NCBI GenBank assembly: GCA_011109175.1 | Contig: RDEW01000004.1 | Coordinates: 1,415,067-1,479,066, forward strand | Source: Dicyema japonicum | Taxonomy: Eukaryota > Animalia > Dicyemida | Length of the DNA: 64,000 bases | Direction of reading: 5' to 3' | In this document: piece by piece, positions 20,906 to 59,925 of the stretch | Layout: each line of letters opens with the position of its first letter | Numbering within the stretch: position 1 is the first letter of the stretch | Notes under the pieces: generated by a model | The model's database searches: none | Told to the model about the DNA's origin: nothing | Seen by the model: the letters and a program-made list of their open reading frames with translations, nothing else | Program-made: the position numbers and the translations under genes

Positions 20906-22570
20906 TCAAAACAAACTAATATATTTTATTCGGTGGTCAGCTGGAAAATACAAAAGTGCTTTATGAGTGTCAGTAAAAGACGGAATCGCTATTAAATCAA
21001 CAGATAACTCATTTTCGGGATCTAAAAGTAAAATATCTGAAAAATACAATAAATATGTTTTAGTCCGAATTGATGAACTGCATTCCCAGTAAACAAAACA
21101 TGAGGTAATTCATCAATTATGAACGGATCAGAGTCCTCAAAAGGAAACGTTGCTGCATAATTAAATTTAAACAAACTCAATGTATCCGGGGTTGTGGGCG
21201 CCAAATGGCCACATTTTAGCGACATTTCAAGACAGTCAAGTTCACCGATAGAGTCGTCCACATTTTTAATCATATCTTGAACAATCTGTCCGGAACTTCC
21301 AACAAAACTACAATAAGTAATACAAAACTGAATATTATTCAAACAGAAATCTGAAGGATTCGACAAAAGGTGAAAATTTGGAGATCGTGTACTTTTGGGG
21401 AAAAAATACGGCTTTATTGGAGCTTGGGGCAACATGATATTGGAAATGTCGTTGATTCCAGGCATTACTATAACAGGAAATGTGATCTACAATGATCAGA
21501 ATAAAAAAATACTGAAATTTCGGCAAACCAACAATCAAGAGATTCGATAACATTATGGGCTTCTAAATTCCGTTTGTTCAACTTAGAATCCTTAAAATCA
21601 AATTTAAAAAAGCTACAATCATAGCTGTTTTATTGTATGTGTTGCCCAAAATAAATTCGTTTCTTTGAAAAAATTCCTCACTTAATGAGTTTCCGACGAC
21701 AACAACCGCTTCGATCATAGAAACAAATGAATCTTGAGTAGCTTTTCCTCCGAGGAAGCCGCTCAGAATATCAAAAAGATTTCTAATGGGACCAGTAACC
21801 CCATTTTCTCCAAGAGCCAGATTTGACAAAAATAAAATGCATCTAAGATATTTAAAATAATTAACTTTTTATTTTCAGGTAGTTGAAATCTCGTTCGAAA
21901 TTTGCTCAAATTGGGGGATATAAACTGATGATCTATTACATTGAAGATTCCTTTATTATTTTCTATTCCACGGACGGCAATACAGACTCCTTAATTTTTA
22001 CATATAATAAAATCAAAAGACAGTAAAAAATTACTGACCTATGAATTTTAGAATCAAATATGATAATTATTAAATTATTTTTATATTAAAAATATATTGA
22101 AAATATTTTTTAATTTTTAAAAATTAAACGTTGATTACCTGTGGGCAAAAAGTTGGGATTAATTCCATCGAGTAAAATGCGTTGAGATTCATCCTCTAAT
22201 ATCAGTTTATCGCTAGGACTGCACAGACTCTTCCGTTCATTCGTGTTAGTGTCAACTTTAATTAAACTCATCTAATATATAAATCGGAAATATACAGATT
22301 TTGTCAGCTCATTAATTATGTTGCTTTTTAGCTCCATTTCTTTATAAACACATCCTAATATTACACACTCTTGTTCAGGAACAACGCTGCATAGATTCCT
22401 TACTGGAACTCCTTTGTAAGACGCTAACGGGTTTTAGTAATAAAAATACGATTTTTCATGTAACGGATTTTTGCTTCTTTAAGTCTTTGATTGCAAAAAT
22501 GAAAGTATTGTGCTTCATATGTTTTTTCATTCGGCTTAAACCGATCACAATTATTTACAAATTTAACCAT
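20906..22570 (-). CDS. POLD2: DNA polymerase delta subunit 2
   Basis: QYFHFCNQRL..ECVILGCVYKEM..DKLILEDESQRI, AVVVVGNSL, MLPQAPI, SSGQIVQD..LAPTTPDTL..FPFEDSDPFIIDELPHVLFTGN and IAIPSFTDT; short GT-AG introns throughout. Confidence 0.95.
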
Positions 22571-36975: not shown

Positions 36976-39950
36976 ATTTATTATATATTTATTAACCCCG
37001 AGATCACCGAGAAAGAAAGACAAAGTTAAGTCAACTAGTTAGGTGATCCCAGTTCCCACAACCAAACGTGTCATCCTAAGCCTGTGCGTCTCCATTGATC
37101 CCACTGTCGAACGGAAATGCCTTCTTTGATCCTTGCAGAGGAAGCCGATTGGAGAAGAAAATTTCATAGCCAACCGATTTTCTTTAACGTGGAACAGTGA
37201 GAGGCTTAGTGGGTGTCCATCTTCCTCGCAACTGCGTAGACAGTCGCTATTTATTTTTTTAACTCCAAGACCACCAAGAAAGATAGGTCAAAACTAACTA
37301 ATTGGGTGATCCCAGCCTCCAATAACATCAGAACTCACTTCATCTGGTCTTCTGATGACCCATCTGCATTCCGGAAACGCCTTCTCTTCCTTCTGTAAAG
37401 CGATTCAATCGGCGTGCACTTTTTTTACAAACGACCGAAATTCCTCTGCATGGGCCATTTTTTCCTTGAATGGGTTTTCCAGTTCCTTGCAGAAACGTAG
37501 GAAACCCTGGTCATTCTTTAACGTCGATGACTTGTTGGTAGACCTTGTTGACGCAAGCATCAGGGGGGAAAAGGCTTTTCTTTATGATCGCTTTTAAAAT
37601 GTTCCATTTCCGAAGACCCTTGGCAAGCACTCCTCCACGTGACTCGAGAACGTCATCAGAGAGTTGAAAACTACCCCATGGATCTTTTTGGTCCGCGTAG
37701 AAGAGATAGAAGTATCTCCAAAAAACAGTTTGAGTCCATCTTTAAATCTTTTATCAGTAGTGAATATGATGAACTGGGATTTAGATGCTGACAAACATAA
37801 CATATTTGCAGATAGCCAGTCACATATTCGGTTTAGGTGTGACTGAACAGTTGCTACACGGAAGGAGATTTATCTCTTGCAGCGATAATTAGGTCGTCCG
37901 CATATGATAAAAACATAGTGTCCTGGTCATTGGTAGTAGGTAGGTCATGTAGAAATAGGTTGAAAAGGAGAGGAAATAAAGGGGAGCCTTGCGGGACCCC
38001 ATTGGGGAGTAATCTTGATTTTGAAGTGGTTTTGTCAATCCGGACCCTTCCGCGTCGTCCAGTTAAAAAATTTTCCAGCTATAGCTTGATGTTCGGATGT
38101 AAGTTCGAATTAAAAATCTTATGCGTTAGGAGTTACCTCGTAACAGAATCAAAGGCCTTCTGTATGTCGATGGATACTAAGGCCGTCCGTAAGTGTGTTC
38201 TCATGTTGAAGCCGTCAGTAATAAACTGAGAGATAGAACCCAAATAAGTCGTTGTAGAACGGTCTGCCCTGAAACCATGTTGAAACTCTGATAGATTTAG
38301 AACAGGAGAGATGTGCATTAATACAAGCTTTTCCAGTACTTTTGATAAAACACAAGTTATTGAGATTGGGCGATTAGAAGAGGGAACGTCTTTTGGTTTT
38401 CTAGGCTTTAGAATTGGCGTAATCAGGGAGTTTTTCCACATATTAGGTAGCGTATGGTATTTGATAGAGTCGCTGTACAGACTCGATAGTATGGCCCGTG
38501 CCTGAGGTCCAAGGTGTTTGAGGTGAAAATGGTGCAAATACCGTCGGGACCAAAAGCACGAGTGGGACGTAGCAATTTAATAGCCTTTTCTACATCATCG
38601 GGGGTGAAGAAGGTGGAATATGGTTCTTGTTGTGGCCGGCGCCGTTTAACAAATGTAGAACAAGAAAGTTTTATGACTGATCGACACGTAGTACTTCATA
38701 ATTTTGTTTGCAAATTTGCGTGCAGGTTCTGAAGCGTTGCGAGTAACGGTTTTCCAAAATGTGGCACAAAAGTTTTTATGACATAGTCATCCAACTAGGC
38801 GGCTCCATTTGAGTCTGTTGTTATTTCGGATAAGCTCAGATAACTTGGTATTCAGTGAACATATAGAATAAAAGGAGTTATTGGACTGCGTTCTTTTCCT
38901 CTACAGCGCATCTCGTTTCTTGATGAGTAACACAATTTGCGATGATAATATTGGATTGAACTTCTTGTAAAAGGCGACAGGTATAAATAATTAATCAGCT
39001 TTCAAAATGATAGCAGACAGAATCTTGGCCGTCTTCTCTACTATACAATTAACTATAGTGAGGTCAAAGAGACTATTGTCCACATGCGCCCTGAAACCTT
39101 GCCAGTCAGCTTTCGAGTAATTTTTGAACTTTGTAGAGCAACACAGTGAACAAATAGGCCTTCTAAGTCTCAGCACAATGGGGTTATGGTCCCTTGAGAA
39201 ACCATAACGAACATTCCATGAAATACATCCAGCCATAGAAGGATAGCAGAGGGACAGGTCCGGGGATGTTGGACTGTCCCTTCTGCGGGACGGGGTCCTT
39301 GTGTGAGCGTCCGGGTCATTGAGGATAGTCAAATCATTAAGTAAGGAAAGGATGTACTCGCCGCGACTATCGGCTGATTGTGTCCGGAGCTAGAGTGGAT
39401 GTTTGGCATCTAGGTCTCCGCATAGTAGCAGATCCTTTAGTCCACACAGTCTCAATAGGTTGGGATGTAGGAAGTAGTGCATGATCCCTGAGGCGGGATA
39501 TATAATTACACAGTGTAAAACATCTCGTCGGAGAAAGGAAACTTCAATAGAAATCTGTTTCAGAATAAGATCCCCTTCGCAGAGAGAAGATACAGAAGGG
39601 GTGACATCCGTAAATTAAAGTCCATCCTTAACGATAGTCAATAATCCTCCTCCGAGACTTCTCGTTCGGTCCCTGCGAAGTACACAATATCCAGGAAAAC
39701 AAGGTGTTGGGGACTTTATAGAGAGCTTCAATTCTTGAATGAGGGGAATGTCCACTCTCAAATGGGATAAAAGGGATCGTAATTCCAACACTTTATTACG
39801 GATTCCATTTACATTTAATTGTAGAATAGTCAGTTGGGTCCAGGATTAGGTTCTACATCACCAGACAGAAGTAGTAAAGAGAAAACGGGGGAGTTGATAG
39901 GCCACCCTTCTGAAGATTGCAAAAAGGTAGGGAAAGTCGAAGGCAGCCGC
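36976..39950 (-). mobile_element. Ingi/Vingi-like LINE, near full length: N-terminal 2A-like peptide, APE, RT and 3' hairpin tail
   Basis: LLLLSGDVEPNPGP, then LTILQLNVNGIRNK, LCGDLDAKH, SPDLSL, DHNPI, RPISITCVLSKVLEK, FQHGFR and DIQKAFD; the 3' UTR ends GGGGTTAATAAATA. Confidence 0.9.
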
Positions 39951-40063
39951 TATATGACCATTTACTCTCTTTTCTTTCCTAAATAAAATATACGAATATT
40001 AATTTTAAATATATATTTCAAATAAATAAAAAAAGAATATATTAACTGTAATAACGTTGCTCC

Positions 40064-40508
40064 ATGCTGTTGACTAGACTTTGTTTCAGAAAAAATTCAT
40101 TGATGTATGTCTTAATTTAAATTCTTGAAGGCGTATTATTCTCAATACAAGATGTTTTCAAAGTGATGAAGGTGGGAGATCTGTAGTTAATTCTTTTACA
40201 GGAGATATATTTTCTGGGGATTATTTGAGAGTTTTATTTTCAATTTAAAATTCTCAGTTATCAAATAATCTTTTTGTCTCGTTCAGAGATTATGAAGGCA
40301 AACGGTACATTAATATCAGAAGATATTCTATAGTAGATAACGATATTCGTCCGACTAGTAGGGGTATTTGATCATATTAAAGTTTTTTGTAGGAGTTTAC
40401 ATTAATTGTGATAATTGGAAAAAGTTGAAGTCATTCATGGAAAAGATTGGTGATGACTTTAATCTACCGGAGTCAAACTCGGAAAGCGACGAAGCAACCG
40501 AAAATTAA
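40064..40508 (+). CDS. PC4 (SUB1)-fold ssDNA-binding protein with putative mitochondrial presequence, copy 1 (120 aa, 4 exons)
   Basis: Introns 40105-40130, 40231-40257 and 40364-40392 give an open frame. The domain LRLSNNLFVSFRDYEGKRYINIRRY..RPTSRGVYINCDNWKKLK matches the PC4 pattern. Confidence 0.8.
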
Positions 40509-40584
40509 ACCTTTATTTGTGGATGTTTTGGTTTATTTAAACTTTCTTTCTTTAAAATTACTGCTATGCTTTTTGAGGTAGGTT

Positions 40585-42560
40585 TTTCAACAATTAGTTA
40601 ATTTATCCCAGTTTCACTAGCCAGTAAGAGGCTGGTGGCCTTGCTTGGTGCTTCCATAACTTTCTGAAATGAGTAGGGGGAAAAACCAGTGAGAATCTTT
40701 ATTAAGAGGGAAGTAAATAGGTTAACATGGGTGGACTAAAAATAAAAATTAATACACTTTGAAAAACCCAGAGCTTATCACAAGAAAGAGGACAGGAGTT
40801 ATCGTACATATCATGCTTTCTCCTGCGGTTAGTTCGGAATCCTAGATTAAGCTCCACAAGGGGAATGTTTCTTCTCGTATTTCGGGCAGGTGTTCGGATA
40901 TAGTTTGATTTCCGGTTTGATGGGACGTTCGGTGCCGTTCCGTAAGGTATTCTATGATTGAGGAGACGTTTAGTGTTCTCCGTAGTAACGACGTGGACGT
41001 CATTTTTGACGATCTCAATAATATTCTGTGACATCCCTGTTTTAACACTTCCAGTTTACTATGTGCTGATAGCGGGTCAATGTAGCACAAACGAAGTTGG
41101 CCCACACGATCGTTGATGAAGTTAGCCAACCATAACTTAAATTTAGGGGGATCGACGTCATGAAAATTTTTGCGGTAAGGATCTTCCGGAATACTGAATC
41201 AAAATCCACTGAGACCAGCTTAGTTCTCTTATGTGGATTTGGAGTATTGAGGCCGTCGGAAATGAATTTTAAAAGTTTTGTTGAGTTGCTGTTTTGATTC
41301 CTTCGCGGAATACATGTAAATTATATGTAACTGTTACGAAAGGATGGATCTTGAGAAGGACCAGTTTTTCCAACACGTGACAACGCACAGATGATGGATA
41401 CCGGTGGTAGGAGGATGGGAAGTTAGGTGGTTTGTTTTATTCAGGATAGGATGTATCAGTGATTTCTTCCATATTAACGGAATCTTGTTCTCGTTTATTG
41501 AGAGATTGAAATTCTGTTATTACCATTGTCGCAAAAGGATCCAAGTGCTTCAGTTCGGGAACGGAGATATTGGCTGAACCGCGGGACAACAAGTTATTCA
41601 TTTTTCTGAATTTTTAAATGCACAATAGACGGGTCGAAGAAATTTATGTTGGAACATTTATTCTTTCAAACATGGCCTGAACGAAGATACGGGACTTTTG
41701 AATGTGGTTTATTATTGATATTCACGTAGTATTTCATAAAGTTATTTGGATTTGGACATAACTCTCGATGTCCAAATAAATATGTAGAGCATTTCTTAAG
41801 CCTCCTGATTGATTTCCATAATACAATTAAAGAAGTATTATTCGTAGTTTTTCTCAGCACTGCTTCACAGCGTTCTTTGTTGTGTTTTATGTTGTTCCGC
41901 ATTATTTCCTTAGTTTTGATATCCTTTCAGTGACGTCCACTGATTGTCTTTTGACTTTCTGTAGATTATTTCTCGTTTGGATGAGATCTTGTGTTTCAGA
42001 ATCAATTGAATGTGAGGGACGTAGATGGCTACCCGTCGAATGAATCCTTTGCGAGCTCAATAATTTAATGTGAGGGACGTAGATGGCTACCCGTCGGAAT
42101 GAAATCCTCTATCCAAAAACAGTAAGGGCGTTGTTCAATAAAGTATGTGAATGCGAACCACACTGCACGTGAAAAGTGATAATTGTTCTTGGAGTATGCA
42201 TTAACTTTTGTTTTTGTGCAATTCTCATAATGATTGGGTTATGGTCAGTGTGTAACATTCCAAGAAATGACAGCCGCAAAATAATGAGCAGCTAAAGAAA
42301 TTTCAGCTGAAGTAGGTGGGTCAACCCAACGAGACGGGGTCCTTGTGTGTTACTTGGATCATTGAGAATGATCAAGTCGCCAAAAATGCTTGATATGAGA
42401 GCTCCCTGTAGATCCAGTCGTTGGTTAGCATACCACGAAAACCCTGCGGTTACGTCATCTCTAATTAATCGCTTGAGCCGTTGGGACATGACAATGAAGG
42501 AAGAATGTACATATTGACGATTGTCAATCGGAGTGAAAGTAGACGAATTCTCAGAGTTAT
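40585..42560 (-). mobile_element. Vingi-like LINE, decayed, tail-to-tail with PC4 copy 1
   Basis: APE remnant (LIILNDPSNT) and RT-adjacent remnants; 3' end ..CTTACTGGC..ATAAATTAACTAATTG; internal duplication at roughly 42010-42105. Confidence 0.6.
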
Positions 42561-52930: not shown

Positions 52931-53041
52931 ATATATCCAACTATCAAGCAACTAAAAATTAATATTTTTTATATAGAATATTAATTATAATATTTATTTC
53001 AAATTAATAATATAGGAATAAATTATCCGTATCGTTGTATC

Positions 53042-53488
53042 ATGTTTTTGACTCGACTTTGTCTCAGAAAAAATTCATTGATGTATATCTTAATTTAAAT
53101 TCTTGAAGGCGTATTATTCACAATACAAGATGTTTTCAAAGTGAAGACGGTGGGAGATCTGCATTTGATTTTTTTGCAAGAGAATTATTTTCTGGGGATT
53201 ATTTGAGAGTTTTATTTTCAATTTAAAATTTTCAGTTATCAAATAATCTTTTTGTCTCGTGAGAGACCATGAAGGCAAACGGTACATTAATATTAGAAGA
53301 TATGCTATAGTAGATAACGATATTCGTCCGACTAATAGGGGTATTTGATTATATTAAAGTTTTTTATTGTAGGAGTTTACATTAGTTGTGATAATTGGAA
53401 AAGGTTGAAGTCATTCATGGAAAAGATTGGTGATGACTTTGATCTACCGGAGTCAAACTCGGAAAGCGACGAAACAACCGAAAATTAA
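53042..53488 (+). CDS. PC4-fold protein copy 2; a 1-nt deletion near 53260 creates TGA (pseudogene or assembly error)
   Basis: Same four-exon structure and splice sites as copy 1; TCG-T-GAGAGAC here versus TCG-TTC-AGAGAT in copy 1. Confidence 0.7.
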
Positions 53489-54356
53489 ACCCTTAGTTGT
53501 GGATGTTTGGTTTATTTAAACTTTCTTTCTTTAAAATTACTGCTATGCTTTTTGAGTAAGGTTTTTCAACAATTAGTTAATTTATGCCAGTAAGAAGCTG
53601 GCGGTCTTCTTGTGCATAGTCATATAACTCCCTGAAAGTGAGTGATGAGAGGGGCAAATAAAATTGAGATTTTAAAGGGAAGCAGCTATTAACCAGAGTG
53701 GGTGGACAAAGAATCCGAATTAGTCGCGAGCTTAAATATTCAGAGCTAATCTGAGACTGGAACAGCGTAGTTACTTTCCAATGGGAGCTTTAGATGGATT
53801 AACGGAGGAATGGAGTCAAGTATCGGATTACGGTCCAGAAAACGGATCTCATAAATATCGATATTATTTTTGATAACTTTCGATCTTTTGATGCCGTGGT
53901 TAGGAGTCTGGAGTTAGTTCCGTTGATTAAATCTCACGAAGTTTACTATAATTGATCATAGAATAGCATGGATGAGATACAGGAATCGCGGAAATCACAT
54001 CTTCAGATGATTGGAGTTAGCCAGGACTATCGATTACCAATTTAGGTGATCGACTAGAGCAGTGGTTCTCAACCTTTTTGGTCTGTGAGCAAAATCAATA
54101 ATTAACACTTGGTTCGCGGGCCGCAAAAAATTTTTAAAGAAATTAAACTTTATTAAATAAAAATAATGTGAGAATCTGTTTTCCTTCTACTAATCTTTCA
54201 AAACAAAGACTCATTTTTGATGACGACGTACGTAAGAGTCGCATAAGATGTTCATCAGTTAATTGGTTGAGAAATTTAATTTCAATCGGTGCTAGTCTGC
54301 TGAACAGAGCTTCTCAAATATAGGTTGATCCAAATACAGACGCGTAGCCATATTTG

Positions 54357-55526
54357 CGTGTCCATTCAAAATGGCCTCTTTCAAAATGGCCTCCATTCAA
54401 AATGACCTCCATTCAAAACGGCCTCCATTCAAAATGGCCTCCAATTAATTTTTTCAGGTTTTGGATAAGTTCATCAATAAACATCACGAGATTTTAGCGA
54501 AACGACATCTTTAGGTAAAAAAGTCATCTTTTTTAAATCTTATAAAAATTGATTTTAGCAAGGTCCTCGACATCTTTAGGTAAAAAAGTCATCTTTTTTA
54601 AATCTTATAAAAATTGATTTTAGCAAGGTCCTCGACATCTTTAGGTAAAAAAGTCATCTTTTTTAAATCTTATAAAAATTGATTTTAGCAAGGTCCTCGA
54701 CATCTTTAGGTAAAAAAGTCATCTTTTTTAAATCTTATAAAAATTGATTTTGCCAAGGTCCTCGACATCTTTAGGTAAAAAAGTCATCTTTTTTAAATCT
54801 TATAAAAATTGATTTTAGCAAGGTCCTCGACATCTTTAGGTAAAAAATCATCTTTTTTAAATCTTATAAAAATTGATTTTACCAAGGTCCTCGACATCTT
54901 TAGGTAAAAAATCATCTTTTTTAAATCTTATAAAAATTGATTTTACCAAGGTCCTCGACATCTTTAGGTAAAAATCATCTTTTTTAAATCTTATAAAAAT
55001 TGATTTTACCAAGGTCCTCGACATCTTTAGGTAAAAAAGTCATCTTTTTTAAATCTTATAAAAATTGATTTTAACGGGTCCTATGGGTAAGTGGAACATT
55101 TTACCAAGGTCCATATCTCAATTGGAGGCTGGCACAACGTTTTTAGAAGTACATTTGGACACTAAACAAGATTCCAAGAAATTTTGTTAAGAAATTGATA
55201 AAAGAAGAAAGCATAATGATAAAATTCTTAAGATTACGAAATGGAGAAAAAATTCTTAGAAAAACTAAATTTATCGCTTTATCTGAGAATACATTGAGAT
55301 TTGTTTAAGAACAAATGTTACTTAACTTGGATCCGATAGAATATATATTCAATTTAGTTGAATATTTGAAAATAAATCTTTCATTTTAAATTTAAATAAA
55401 AATATTTAAAAAAAATAAATGTTTACCTAAAGATGTCGAGGACCTTGGTAAAATATCTCGTGATGTCTATTGATGAACGTATCCAAAACCTGAGAAATTT
55501 TATTGGAGGCCATTTTGAATGGGAAC
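54357..55526 (+). mobile_element. MULE-like non-autonomous element with long TIRs and an internal tandem array
   Basis: 9-bp TSD CCATATTTG (54348-54356 and 55527-55535); roughly 100-bp inverted termini; transposase C-terminal remnant GWHNVFRSTFGH near 55130. Confidence 0.8.
54503..55073 (+). repeat. Tandem array of 9 units of 63-65 bp
   Basis: Units start at 54503, 54568, 54633, 54698, 54763, 54828, 54892, 54956 and 55019 (CGACATCTTTAGGTAAAAAAGTCATC..AAGGTCCT). Confidence 0.95.
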
Positions 55527-56577: not shown

Positions 56578-57973
56578 GGGTTTTCCTATCACTAACGACA
56601 ATAGTCAATCACTAACTACAATAGTCAGTCAATAACGACAATAGTCAATAATATCGACACGTGGTCAATCATTAACGACAATTTGTCAATCAATACGATA
56701 CTGGAGCAGAGTAAAAACGAATTTTTTTTTATTTAATCGAATTTCCACTCTAATGACCGCATTAAACAACTAAGAAAATGGAATAAACAATTGCAAGTAA
56801 AATCTCAAATGATTCAGAAAACTCGTTATTAACCACGCTAAGAATAATCTTGGCAATACTGAGATCTCCTGAGTTTTAGGGTCTTCCACGTACTGTATGT
56901 ACAATTGTTTCTTCATATCTGAAGGATGGAAAGACCAATTGTTGCAAGTGTGGCGGGGATCATAGAACAATCTCGACTGCTGATCAGAAAAATTTAATAC
57001 GGCAGTGGGTTGAGAAGATGCAACAATGACCTTGGGGCGTTGAAAATAAAACTGTATGAGGAGATGGAGATATCCGTAGGTACAAGCATCATTAACCGCT
57101 GTTTAAATGAATTTCACTACACAGTAAAAACTCTCAGCATTGTTCATGAGAGAAGAAACTGTGAAAGAACCATTGAGACACGATTGAAATATGGGAAAAA
57201 TTTCCAAGAAATTTTATTTGACGTTGGGGATAGCCGAATAGTCTTTATAGACGAGGTAGGTTACAATGTCTCCCAGCGCGTTCACTTTGGGAGATCCGAA
57301 AGAAGTATTTCTACGGGTATTAACGTGCCACAGGTACGTAGTAGGAATATTTCAGTAATGGTTGCAGTGACTGCACATGGTATGGTCTATTATTCTATTG
57401 TTGAGGGTGCTGTTAATGGGGAAATCTTTAAAAATTTCTTGATTCAACATAAGGGAGTTTGTGAAAGTAAAGGAATTGTGGATCTCTACTTCATCATGGA
57501 CAATGCTAGGATTCACCATTATAATGAACTCGACGAAGTAGTCCAATCCCACAAACTCAAGATACTATATCTTCCTCCATACTCACCATTCCTTAATCCA
57601 ATTGAGAATGTGTTATAAAAATAAAAGAATTCTGTGAAGAGAGGGGCTTCTATTGATGATTTACAGCTAAGACATCTTATATCATCTTCTTTCGAATTAA
57701 TTACCCCTAAAGACTGAGGAGGATACTTCAGAAGGAAGAAAGGATACATTATGAGAGCAGTTAATGGTGAAATTATCAATGCATAAATAATTTTTTTAAC
57801 TAGTATTGTTGTAAAAATTAATTTTTCTGGCGTAATTAATTGACTATTGTCGATATTGATTAACGAAATGTCGTTGTTTATTGACTATTTTCGATAGTGA
57901 TTAACGAAATGTCGTTGTTTATTGACTATTTTCGTTAGTGATTGACGAAGTGTCGTCAGTGATAGGAAAACCT
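56578..57973 (+). mobile_element. IS630/Tc1-superfamily DNA transposon (DD34E), disrupted transposase
   Basis: TA TSDs; TIRs GGGTTTTCCTATCACT and AGTGATAGGAAAACCT with repetitive subterminal arms; IVFIDE..DNARIHH..LPPYSPFLNPIE; premature TAA at 57616. Confidence 0.92.
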
Positions 57974-59530: not shown

Positions 59531-59853
59531 GTTAAGAAAAGTAACGCTAACTAATCGTTGAAAAAGAGTCAGGGAATTATTCTTAACTTCTTTTTTATGT
59601 GCTCGAGTCCTTGTAGACGATCCGCATCGTTTTATAACTTTTAAAGACGATCAACAACCAATAAAGAATAGTGTGAAGTTGATGAAATTTAAATAAATTT
59701 ATTTAGGAAAAAAAGTGAGCAAATAATCATATAGAGGCAGCTCTCACTGGGTGGCTATTCCTTCTCAGGATGATGAGGGAGATTCGCTGAAATAACCAGA
59801 GTTGATGAAATAAAAATCAAGTTTGTAACTATATTATAAGAAATAAATTCCCC

Positions 59854-59925
59854 ATCCCCGTCCGGGAATCGAACCCGGGCCGTCAATGTGAGAGACTGAC
59901 ATCCTAACCACTGGACCAACGAGGA
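59854..59925 (-). tRNA. tRNA-Glu (CTC)
   Basis: Cloverleaf: acceptor TCCTCGT/ACGGGGA, anticodon arm TCAGT-CT[CTC]AC-ATTGA and T arm CCGGG-TTCGATT-CCCGG. The discriminator T and weak downstream T-run leave its function uncertain. Confidence 0.85.

Follow-up and report, generated by a model that had tools for sequence, protein, structure and literature searches.

A duplicated PC4/SUB1-family gene with a putative mitochondrial-type leader in the dicyemid Dicyema japonicum

Introduction

In canonical PC4 (SUB1), the Ser/acidic and Lys-rich N-terminus carries coactivator, double-stranded DNA (dsDNA)-binding and nuclear features. The stand-alone PC4-like proteins of phage T5 and of bacteria serve replication, recombination or the handling of single-stranded DNA (ssDNA), not RNA polymerase II (Pol II) coactivation. 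Here we describe a PC4-family gene of Dicyema japonicum, located in a stretch of 64,000 nucleotides (nt) of contig RDEW01000004.1 (assembly GCA_011109175.1, positions 1,415,067 to 1,479,066 of the forward strand), which is referred to as the window and whose own coordinates are used throughout. Compared with canonical animal PC4, the predicted protein carries at its N-terminus a 23-residue hydrophobic and basic leader and a Gly/Ser/acidic linker instead, and its Ser/acidic stretch lies at the C-terminus, whereas that of canonical PC4 is N-terminal. The most likely single reading of the leader, which we hold tentatively, is that it acts as a mitochondrial presequence.

PC4-like folds are found in organelles elsewhere, in the plant Whirly proteins, such as the mitochondrial WHY2, and in trypanosome MRP1/MRP2, which act on single-stranded nucleic acids and bear N-terminal targeting peptides (PMC7549692), and they offer a functional analogy for the role proposed below. 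Unlike the protein described here, Whirly and MRP1/MRP2 belong to other families with type I PC4-like folds, in which intramolecular dimers assemble as tetramers; they are undetectable by sequence from the dicyemid protein, and membership of these families is not claimed. To our knowledge, neither family has been found in animals. The single-stranded DNA-binding protein of mitochondria (mtSSB, SSBP1) is alike only in the proposed job, the coating of mitochondrial ssDNA, since it is a tetramer of OB fold that is unrelated to the dicyemid protein in sequence and structure. An earlier note, made from the letters of this DNA alone, had brought mtSSB into play through a link between mtSSB loss and minicircular mitochondrial DNA (mtDNA), and both halves of that background were located in the literature: mitochondrial genes of Dicyema lie on circles of 344-1605 bp (PMC6543705), and loss of mtSSB correlates with fragmented mtDNA in lice (PMC3199782, PMC12797587). 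A 2025 study asks explicitly whether other proteins take over the job of mtSSB (PMC12797587).

Results

Gene model and duplicated unit

Splicing in silico of three predicted micro-introns from the plus strand of 40064-40508 gives an open reading frame (ORF) of 363 nt, which encodes 120 amino acids (aa) and a stop codon (Table 1). The resulting protein begins MLLTRLCFRKNSLMRIILNTRCF-QSDEGG, exactly the peptide that the earlier note had obtained, so that its observation is real and is confirmed at the level of an in silico gene model. All three introns are of the GT-AG type, and in the unspliced gene the frame is broken or a stop is met in each of them. Tiny introns are characteristic of the D. 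japonicum genome, which has a G+C content of 36.7% and 49% repeats (PMC6736024), and among animals introns shorter than 30 nt also occur in myxobolid myxozoans, one of which is devoid of mtDNA (PMC13644364). A host of that kind, for which the mitochondrial reading discussed below would fail, is disfavoured by the G+C content of the window, as Henneguya has 29%. The protein ends in a Ser/acidic tail of 15 aa (nt 40461-40505), and its TAA stop overlaps an ATTAAA.

The gene (copy A) was found to be part of a duplicated unit, in which it is accompanied by 76 nt of upstream and about 100 nt of downstream sequence, and which recurs within the window as copy B. The shared upstream stretch is A/T-rich and contains a TATATAT at 40010-40016 and, 12 nt upstream of the ATG of the gene, an in-frame TAA (40052-40054); no further ATG is present in the 76 nt common to both copies.

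Table 1. Positions of the predicted gene, its second copy and other features of the window
Feature	Position in window	Strand	Basis or remark
Putative core promoter and 5' untranslated region (UTR), shared upstream stretch of the duplicated unit	39988-40063	+	Copy B homology starts at 39988
Exon 1, first part of leader: aa 1-13 and 2 nt of codon 14	40064-40104	+	In silico splicing
Intron 1, 26 nt, GTATGT..AAG, splits the Met14 codon (AT/G)	40105-40130	+	Predicted; 1 difference in copy B
Exon 2, remainder of leader to F23 (through 40158), then linker aa 24-47	40131-40230	+	In silico splicing
Intron 2, 27 nt, GT..CAG, TAA inside	40231-40257	+	Predicted
Exon 3, beta-strands of the PC4 domain: aa 48-82 and first base of Gly83	40258-40363	+	Pfam; AlphaFold strands 46-87
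Intron 3, 29 nt, phase 1, within the conserved Gly of the K-K-G/I-S-L motif	40364-40392	+	Predicted
Exon 4, helix that closes the PC4 domain at its C-terminal side (up to about aa 105, nt 40460), tail, TAA stop	40393-40508	+	In silico splicing; phmmer; AlphaFold
Putative 3' UTR, shared downstream stretch of the duplicated unit	40509-40612	+	Copy B homology
Copy B, whole unit	52971-53591	+	628 aligned nt, 91% identical to 39988-40612
Copy B coding sequence (CDS)	53042-53488; exons 53042-53082, 53109-53208, 53236-53340, 53373-53488	+	Alignment to copy A
Reverse transcriptase (RT) fragment	38136-38537	-	
DDE_3 transposase ORF	57010-57615	+	E=6e-24
Exon of DNA polymerase alpha/epsilon subunit B gene	21025-21465	-	E=3e-21
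tRNA-Glu(CTC)	59854-59925	-	

PC4 domain, fold and descent

The segment behind the leader was identified as a PC4 domain by profile, pairwise and structural comparisons, in agreement with the earlier assignment. The full protein scored 39.8 bits (E=3.1e-10) with Pfam PF02229, whose curated cut-off is 25 bits, over aa 47-96 (profile positions 2-51 of 52), and exon 3 by itself matched it at E=1e-5 and 25.4 bits. Among the sequences of the Protein Data Bank (PDB), phmmer matched the C-terminal domain of human PC4 at E=5e-6. The AlphaFold2 model, which was built from a 31-sequence alignment, contained strands at residues 46-49, 52-59, 62-73 and 76-87 and a helix at 88-105, with a predicted local confidence score (pLDDT) of 83-96 over aa 45-105. 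The best PDB matches of this model in Foldseek were human PC4, which has the same four-strand-plus-helix fold (1pcf and 6ycs; template-modelling (TM) score 0.78-0.85, root-mean-square deviation (rmsd) 1.6-2.3 Å), followed by MoSub1, and these two proteins fill the top 12 places. Far weaker structural matches than those to human PC4 were given by the stand-alone PC4-like proteins from phage T5 and from bacteria (YdbC, SP_0782 and BPSL1147; 4bg7, 5a4n/5a4o); these proteins consist of scarcely more than the PC4 domain and lack the leader and the introns that are present here.

To place the protein among its relatives, we searched 1.84 billion representative proteins exhaustively with phmmer (E<=1e-3). 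The search found 123 relatives, all of them aligned to the PC4 domain and mostly to aa 37-118, and the identity to any one of them was at most 39%. Single-domain relatives include proteins of a filasterean, a rotifer (Brachionus plicatilis RNA25207.1), a flatworm (Cichlidogyrus KAL3319026.1) and an orthonectid (Intoshia linei OAF69750.1), and the dicyemid protein shares the PF02229 family with human PC4 and with these animal proteins. Proteins of 330-460 aa from green algae, such as GAB4820297.1 of Parachlorella kessleri, carry four tandem PC4 domains after a DEK-C-like N-terminus, and they top the scores of the relatives because the scores of the four domains are summed. The annotated I. linei protein OAF69750.1 (LWCA01000235.1, 1501-2987) opens with 48 residues of hydrophobic and aromatic character, and the range of its gene overlaps a proteasome gene on the opposite strand. 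The annotated N-terminus of this protein is probably wrong, the real start being a Met just upstream of the domain.

Comparison of gene structures showed that the phase-1 intron 3, in the codon of a conserved Gly, has the identical position and phase in the Brachionus and Intoshia PC4 genes. This places the gene in vertical descent from the animal SUB1 gene, and because the intron position is shared, the dicyemid gene was grouped with the animal genes and not with the phage and bacterial PC4-like genes. As judged from these sequence comparisons, the gene is a vertically inherited and strongly remodelled relative of SUB1, present as two young paralogues. A transposon-borne, viral, bacterial or horizontally acquired PC4 gene was ruled out by the animal-shared intron position and by the read depth, which indicated only two copies.

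The equivalents of F77, K80, R86, P98, K101, G102 and W110 of human PC4 are conserved here; F77 is kept as Tyr59, K80 as Lys62, R86 as Arg68, P98 as Pro79 and K101 as Arg82. The roles of W89, F77 and P98 have been described, and in the structure of PC4 with ssDNA a base is stacked by W89 (PMC7145681). The equivalent of W89 is Ser71 in copy A and Ala in copy B, at a position where 66 of 73 related domains have an aromatic residue, and the equivalents of R70 and K78 are Leu52 and Glu60. The ssDNA contacts of the predicted domain are eroded, and by residue count its core is still net basic.

The leader and its possible mitochondrial role

The N-terminal Ser/acidic (SEAC) and Lys-rich region of canonical PC4 is missing from both copies, as had been proposed. 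The filasterean, rotifer and flatworm relatives begin with MPK... and Ser/acidic, Lys-rich sequence, and neither a Ser/acidic or Lys-rich coding window nor a tblastn match was found within 4 kb upstream of either copy. In its place stands the leader, whose composition agrees with what had been claimed for it: the first 25 residues include 4 Arg and 1 Lys, both Asp and Glu are absent from them, and an R-x-F motif is present as R21-C22-F23. The 23 residues of the leader have a net charge of +5, with no acidic residue before D26, and the remaining protein has a net charge of -4. Hydrophobic residues account for 13/23 positions and Ser/Thr for 3, and the leader gives way abruptly to the Gly/Ser/acidic segment. 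Import receptors recognise leaders of this pattern, which are hydrophobic, net positive and acid-free and change abruptly to an acidic stretch behind. We also found a TOM20-type phi-x-x-phi-phi element at L13-M14-R15-I16-I17 and an R-2/R-3 cleavage pattern at R21-C22-F23/Q24-S25, both of which are short and are weak evidence. The Arg-over-Lys bias of the leader (4:1) was not significant against the background (p=0.2). A signal peptide was ruled out, as the longest uncharged run is only 4 residues.

The second copy, whose protein starts MFLTRLCLRKNSLMRIIHNTRCF, keeps the leader with all five basic residues and still without acidic ones, which bears out the earlier statement that the leader is retained there. 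Between the copies, 3/23 residues are changed in the leader, 10/23 in the linker (aa 24-46), 6/57 in the domain and 2/17 in the tail. The linker is a hot spot of change relative to the rest of the protein (p=0.0009), and the leader has fewer changes than the linker next to it (p=0.047). Within the linker, which has 10 nonsynonymous and 0 synonymous changes, eight of nine consecutive residues (aa 32-40) differ between the copies (40155-40185 against 53133-53163), a cluster that may reflect either positive selection or a complex mutation, or else mark a conversion tract.

Several observations weigh against a mitochondrial presequence and a working mitochondrial protein behind it. The hydrophobic moment of the leader reached at most 0.45 in an 11-residue window and 0.375 in an 18-residue window, values that 85% and 49%, respectively, of the sequences obtained by shuffling its residues also reached (p 0.85 and 0.49), and in the AlphaFold2 model aa 1-44 are without secondary structure, the leader being a coil at pLDDT of about 50. 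The presequence claim of the earlier note is partly supported, through the composition and charge of the leader and its short motifs. The same charge pattern, in which the first 23 aa are free of acidic residues and include 5 or more basic ones, occurs in 5% of 181 random ATG-started ORFs of the window. It is expected to survive 3 random replacements 59% of the time, so its survival in copy B is not evidence, and retention of the leader in both copies says little because neutral sites differ by only 6-10%. Text searches of the literature found no report of a mitochondrial PF02229 protein. Contigs of four public DNA-like runs cross all three introns unspliced, with zero splice joints. To the same side belong the substitutions at the W89, R70 and K78 equivalents and the ratio of nonsynonymous to synonymous change between the copies, which is given below.

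Relatives gave no counterpart of the leader. Its residues 1-14 were aligned by 0/123 relatives, and no genuine leader that is both hydrophobic and basic was found among the animal relatives. One apparent homologue (relative P0062 from another animal, MFLCLTRL..., the sole match to reach far into the leader, aligning from residue 15 of the query) was rejected, because its leader proved to be an A/T-rich intron read by the ORF caller, the true gene starting MPKNKK... one exon upstream. This pseudo-leader indicates that presequence-like peptides arise easily from non-coding A/T-rich DNA, a further point against the mitochondrial reading.

The foremost alternative is a minimal nuclear or nucleo-cytoplasmic PC4, in which one or more first exons were lost during genome reduction and a new ATG was taken from formerly non-coding A/T-rich DNA, the leader being a by-product of composition without a targeting role. 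The 14-kDa protein (28 kDa as a dimer) would diffuse into the nucleus and do ordinary transcription or repair work. We consider this a real possibility, although on balance we doubt it. It draws on the ease with which such peptides arise, as seen in the random ORFs and the P0062 intron, on the unremarkable amphipathicity and absent helix of the leader, and on the characterised PF02229 members found in the literature, which are all nuclear. Domain-only relatives also exist (P0075, 65 aa; P0056, 69 aa), and the Intoshia protein probably begins just upstream of the domain. However, a neutral appendix would not be expected to change less than the linker beside it, the charge and acidic switch of the leader follow the import-receptor pattern, and no Lys/Arg cluster of the nuclear localisation signal (NLS) type is present in the whole protein.

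Divergence between the copies and the question of decay

The leader would be without meaning if the pair were decaying or functionless duplicates drifting in transposon-rich DNA, with the working PC4, if any, elsewhere in the genome. The copy B sequence of the window invites this explanation, since one T is missing after 53259 and a TGA results in exon 3 (53254-53262 reads GTCTCG-TGAGAG). The contigs of the four public runs, which were aligned to copy A at 88% likeness, fall into two types of equal depth. B-type contigs from three runs span 40223-40357 in 135 letters and without a gap, showing the 6-7 substitutions that are expected, and near the site of the missing T they differ only by 40284 C>G, 40290 T>C and 40291 T>C. 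As the reads do not bear out the missing T, the 1-nt deletion in the window is probably an assembly error that creates a false stop, and copy B itself is most likely intact. The introns of copy B measure 26, 27 and 32 nt, and all six splice-site pairs of the two copies are intact.

When copy B is given the base that the reads support, 21 nonsynonymous and 4 synonymous changes separate the two copies (dN 0.077, dS 0.058), an overall dN/dS of about 1.3. This ratio favours decay, as do the loss of three conserved DNA-contact residues and the repeats and transposon relics around the unit, which include the RT fragment, the DDE_3 transposase and a high-copy repeat that abuts the unit at 39988. Neither a protein nor a transcript of the gene is on record in the collections searched; the same is true of the window's own ORFs, so these blanks are uninformative on expression. 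Against decay stand the two intact ORFs, a coding divergence (6.9%) that does not exceed the non-coding one (10.3%), and a domain that keeps its Pfam score and folds with pLDDT above 90. Once the read-contradicted indel is set aside, 6/6 indels between the units lie outside the CDS (p about 0.009), which argues that both ORFs have apparently been kept open. Both ORFs thus seem to be maintained, on data that are too few for a statement about purifying selection on the protein, and a decaying pair appears unlikely.

The 5' end of the gene

The 5' end of the gene is fixed by sequence logic only, and it could be misplaced if TTTGTTTCAG at 40080-40089 were an acceptor for an unseen upstream exon, if a spliced leader were added there, or if translation started at Met14, and the leader would then not open the protein. 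This stretch resembles a good acceptor, and copy B keeps TTTGTCTCAG; however, the shared unit begins only 76 nt upstream, without an ATG or an open frame, the Ser/acidic or Lys-rich coding windows sought within 4 kb upstream of either copy were absent, the sole in-frame micro-intron for that acceptor (21 nt, 40069-40089) is ruled out because copy B has no GT donor, and a start at Met14 would still yield a basic, acid-free N-terminus, so that a wrong 5' model is quite improbable.

Surroundings in the window

The window has a G+C content of 34.7% and is rich in repeats and transposon relics (Table 1). High-copy repeats were found at 39300-39990 and 40900-41040, where read contigs are about 50 times as deep as over the PC4 unit. 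At 39988-39990 many genomic copies of the repeat end and continue into A/T-rich tails, which indicates that the 3' end of a retroposon abuts the start of the duplicated unit. A stretch of 45 nt at 59698-59741, about 110 nt from the tRNA-Glu gene, is inverted and 84% identical to 39943-39987 upstream of the PC4 unit, and it may be a tRNA-linked short interspersed nuclear element (SINE). A 65-nt unit is repeated in tandem over 54438-55103, where overlapping 150-nt register copies number at least 9, those in the centre being 99-100% identical. The motif CACGTG occurs 9 times in the window against 6.2 expected and 0 times in the PC4 unit, without a strong excess in this repeat-rich stretch.

Discussion

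From the sequence we infer expression of the gene, use of the ATG at 40064, import and cleavage of the protein, DNA binding and any link to mtSSB. If the leader is a mitochondrial presequence, it would be recognised via its positive charge and the phi-x-x-phi-phi element at L13-I17 and cleaved near R21-C22-F23, giving a product of about 97 aa. This product would act as a dimeric ssDNA-binding factor on the small circular mtDNAs of the dicyemid, in a Whirly-like manner. The gene would then be a putative mitochondrial PC4/SUB1 paralogue that maintains or replicates the minicircles of less than 2 kb, perhaps in place of an mtSSB that has been lost or reduced, and we regard this fuller account as possible but rather unlikely. 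Actual replacement of mtSSB by the protein is a further step beyond mitochondrial targeting, and a distinctly improbable one. The supplements of two dicyemid genome papers make no mention of PC4, SUB1, SSB, POLG or Twinkle.

If the leader is meaningless, the gene would still show how far a conserved transcription cofactor can shrink in a reduced parasite genome, which is of modest interest. We know of no nuclear factor that replicates or protects the minicircles of dicyemids. Should the mitochondrial reading hold, this would be the first PF02229 protein to be assigned to an animal organelle, it would parallel the Whirly proteins of plants by convergence, and it would offer a candidate, cheap to test, for the protein that takes over from mtSSB in lineages whose mtDNA is fragmented.

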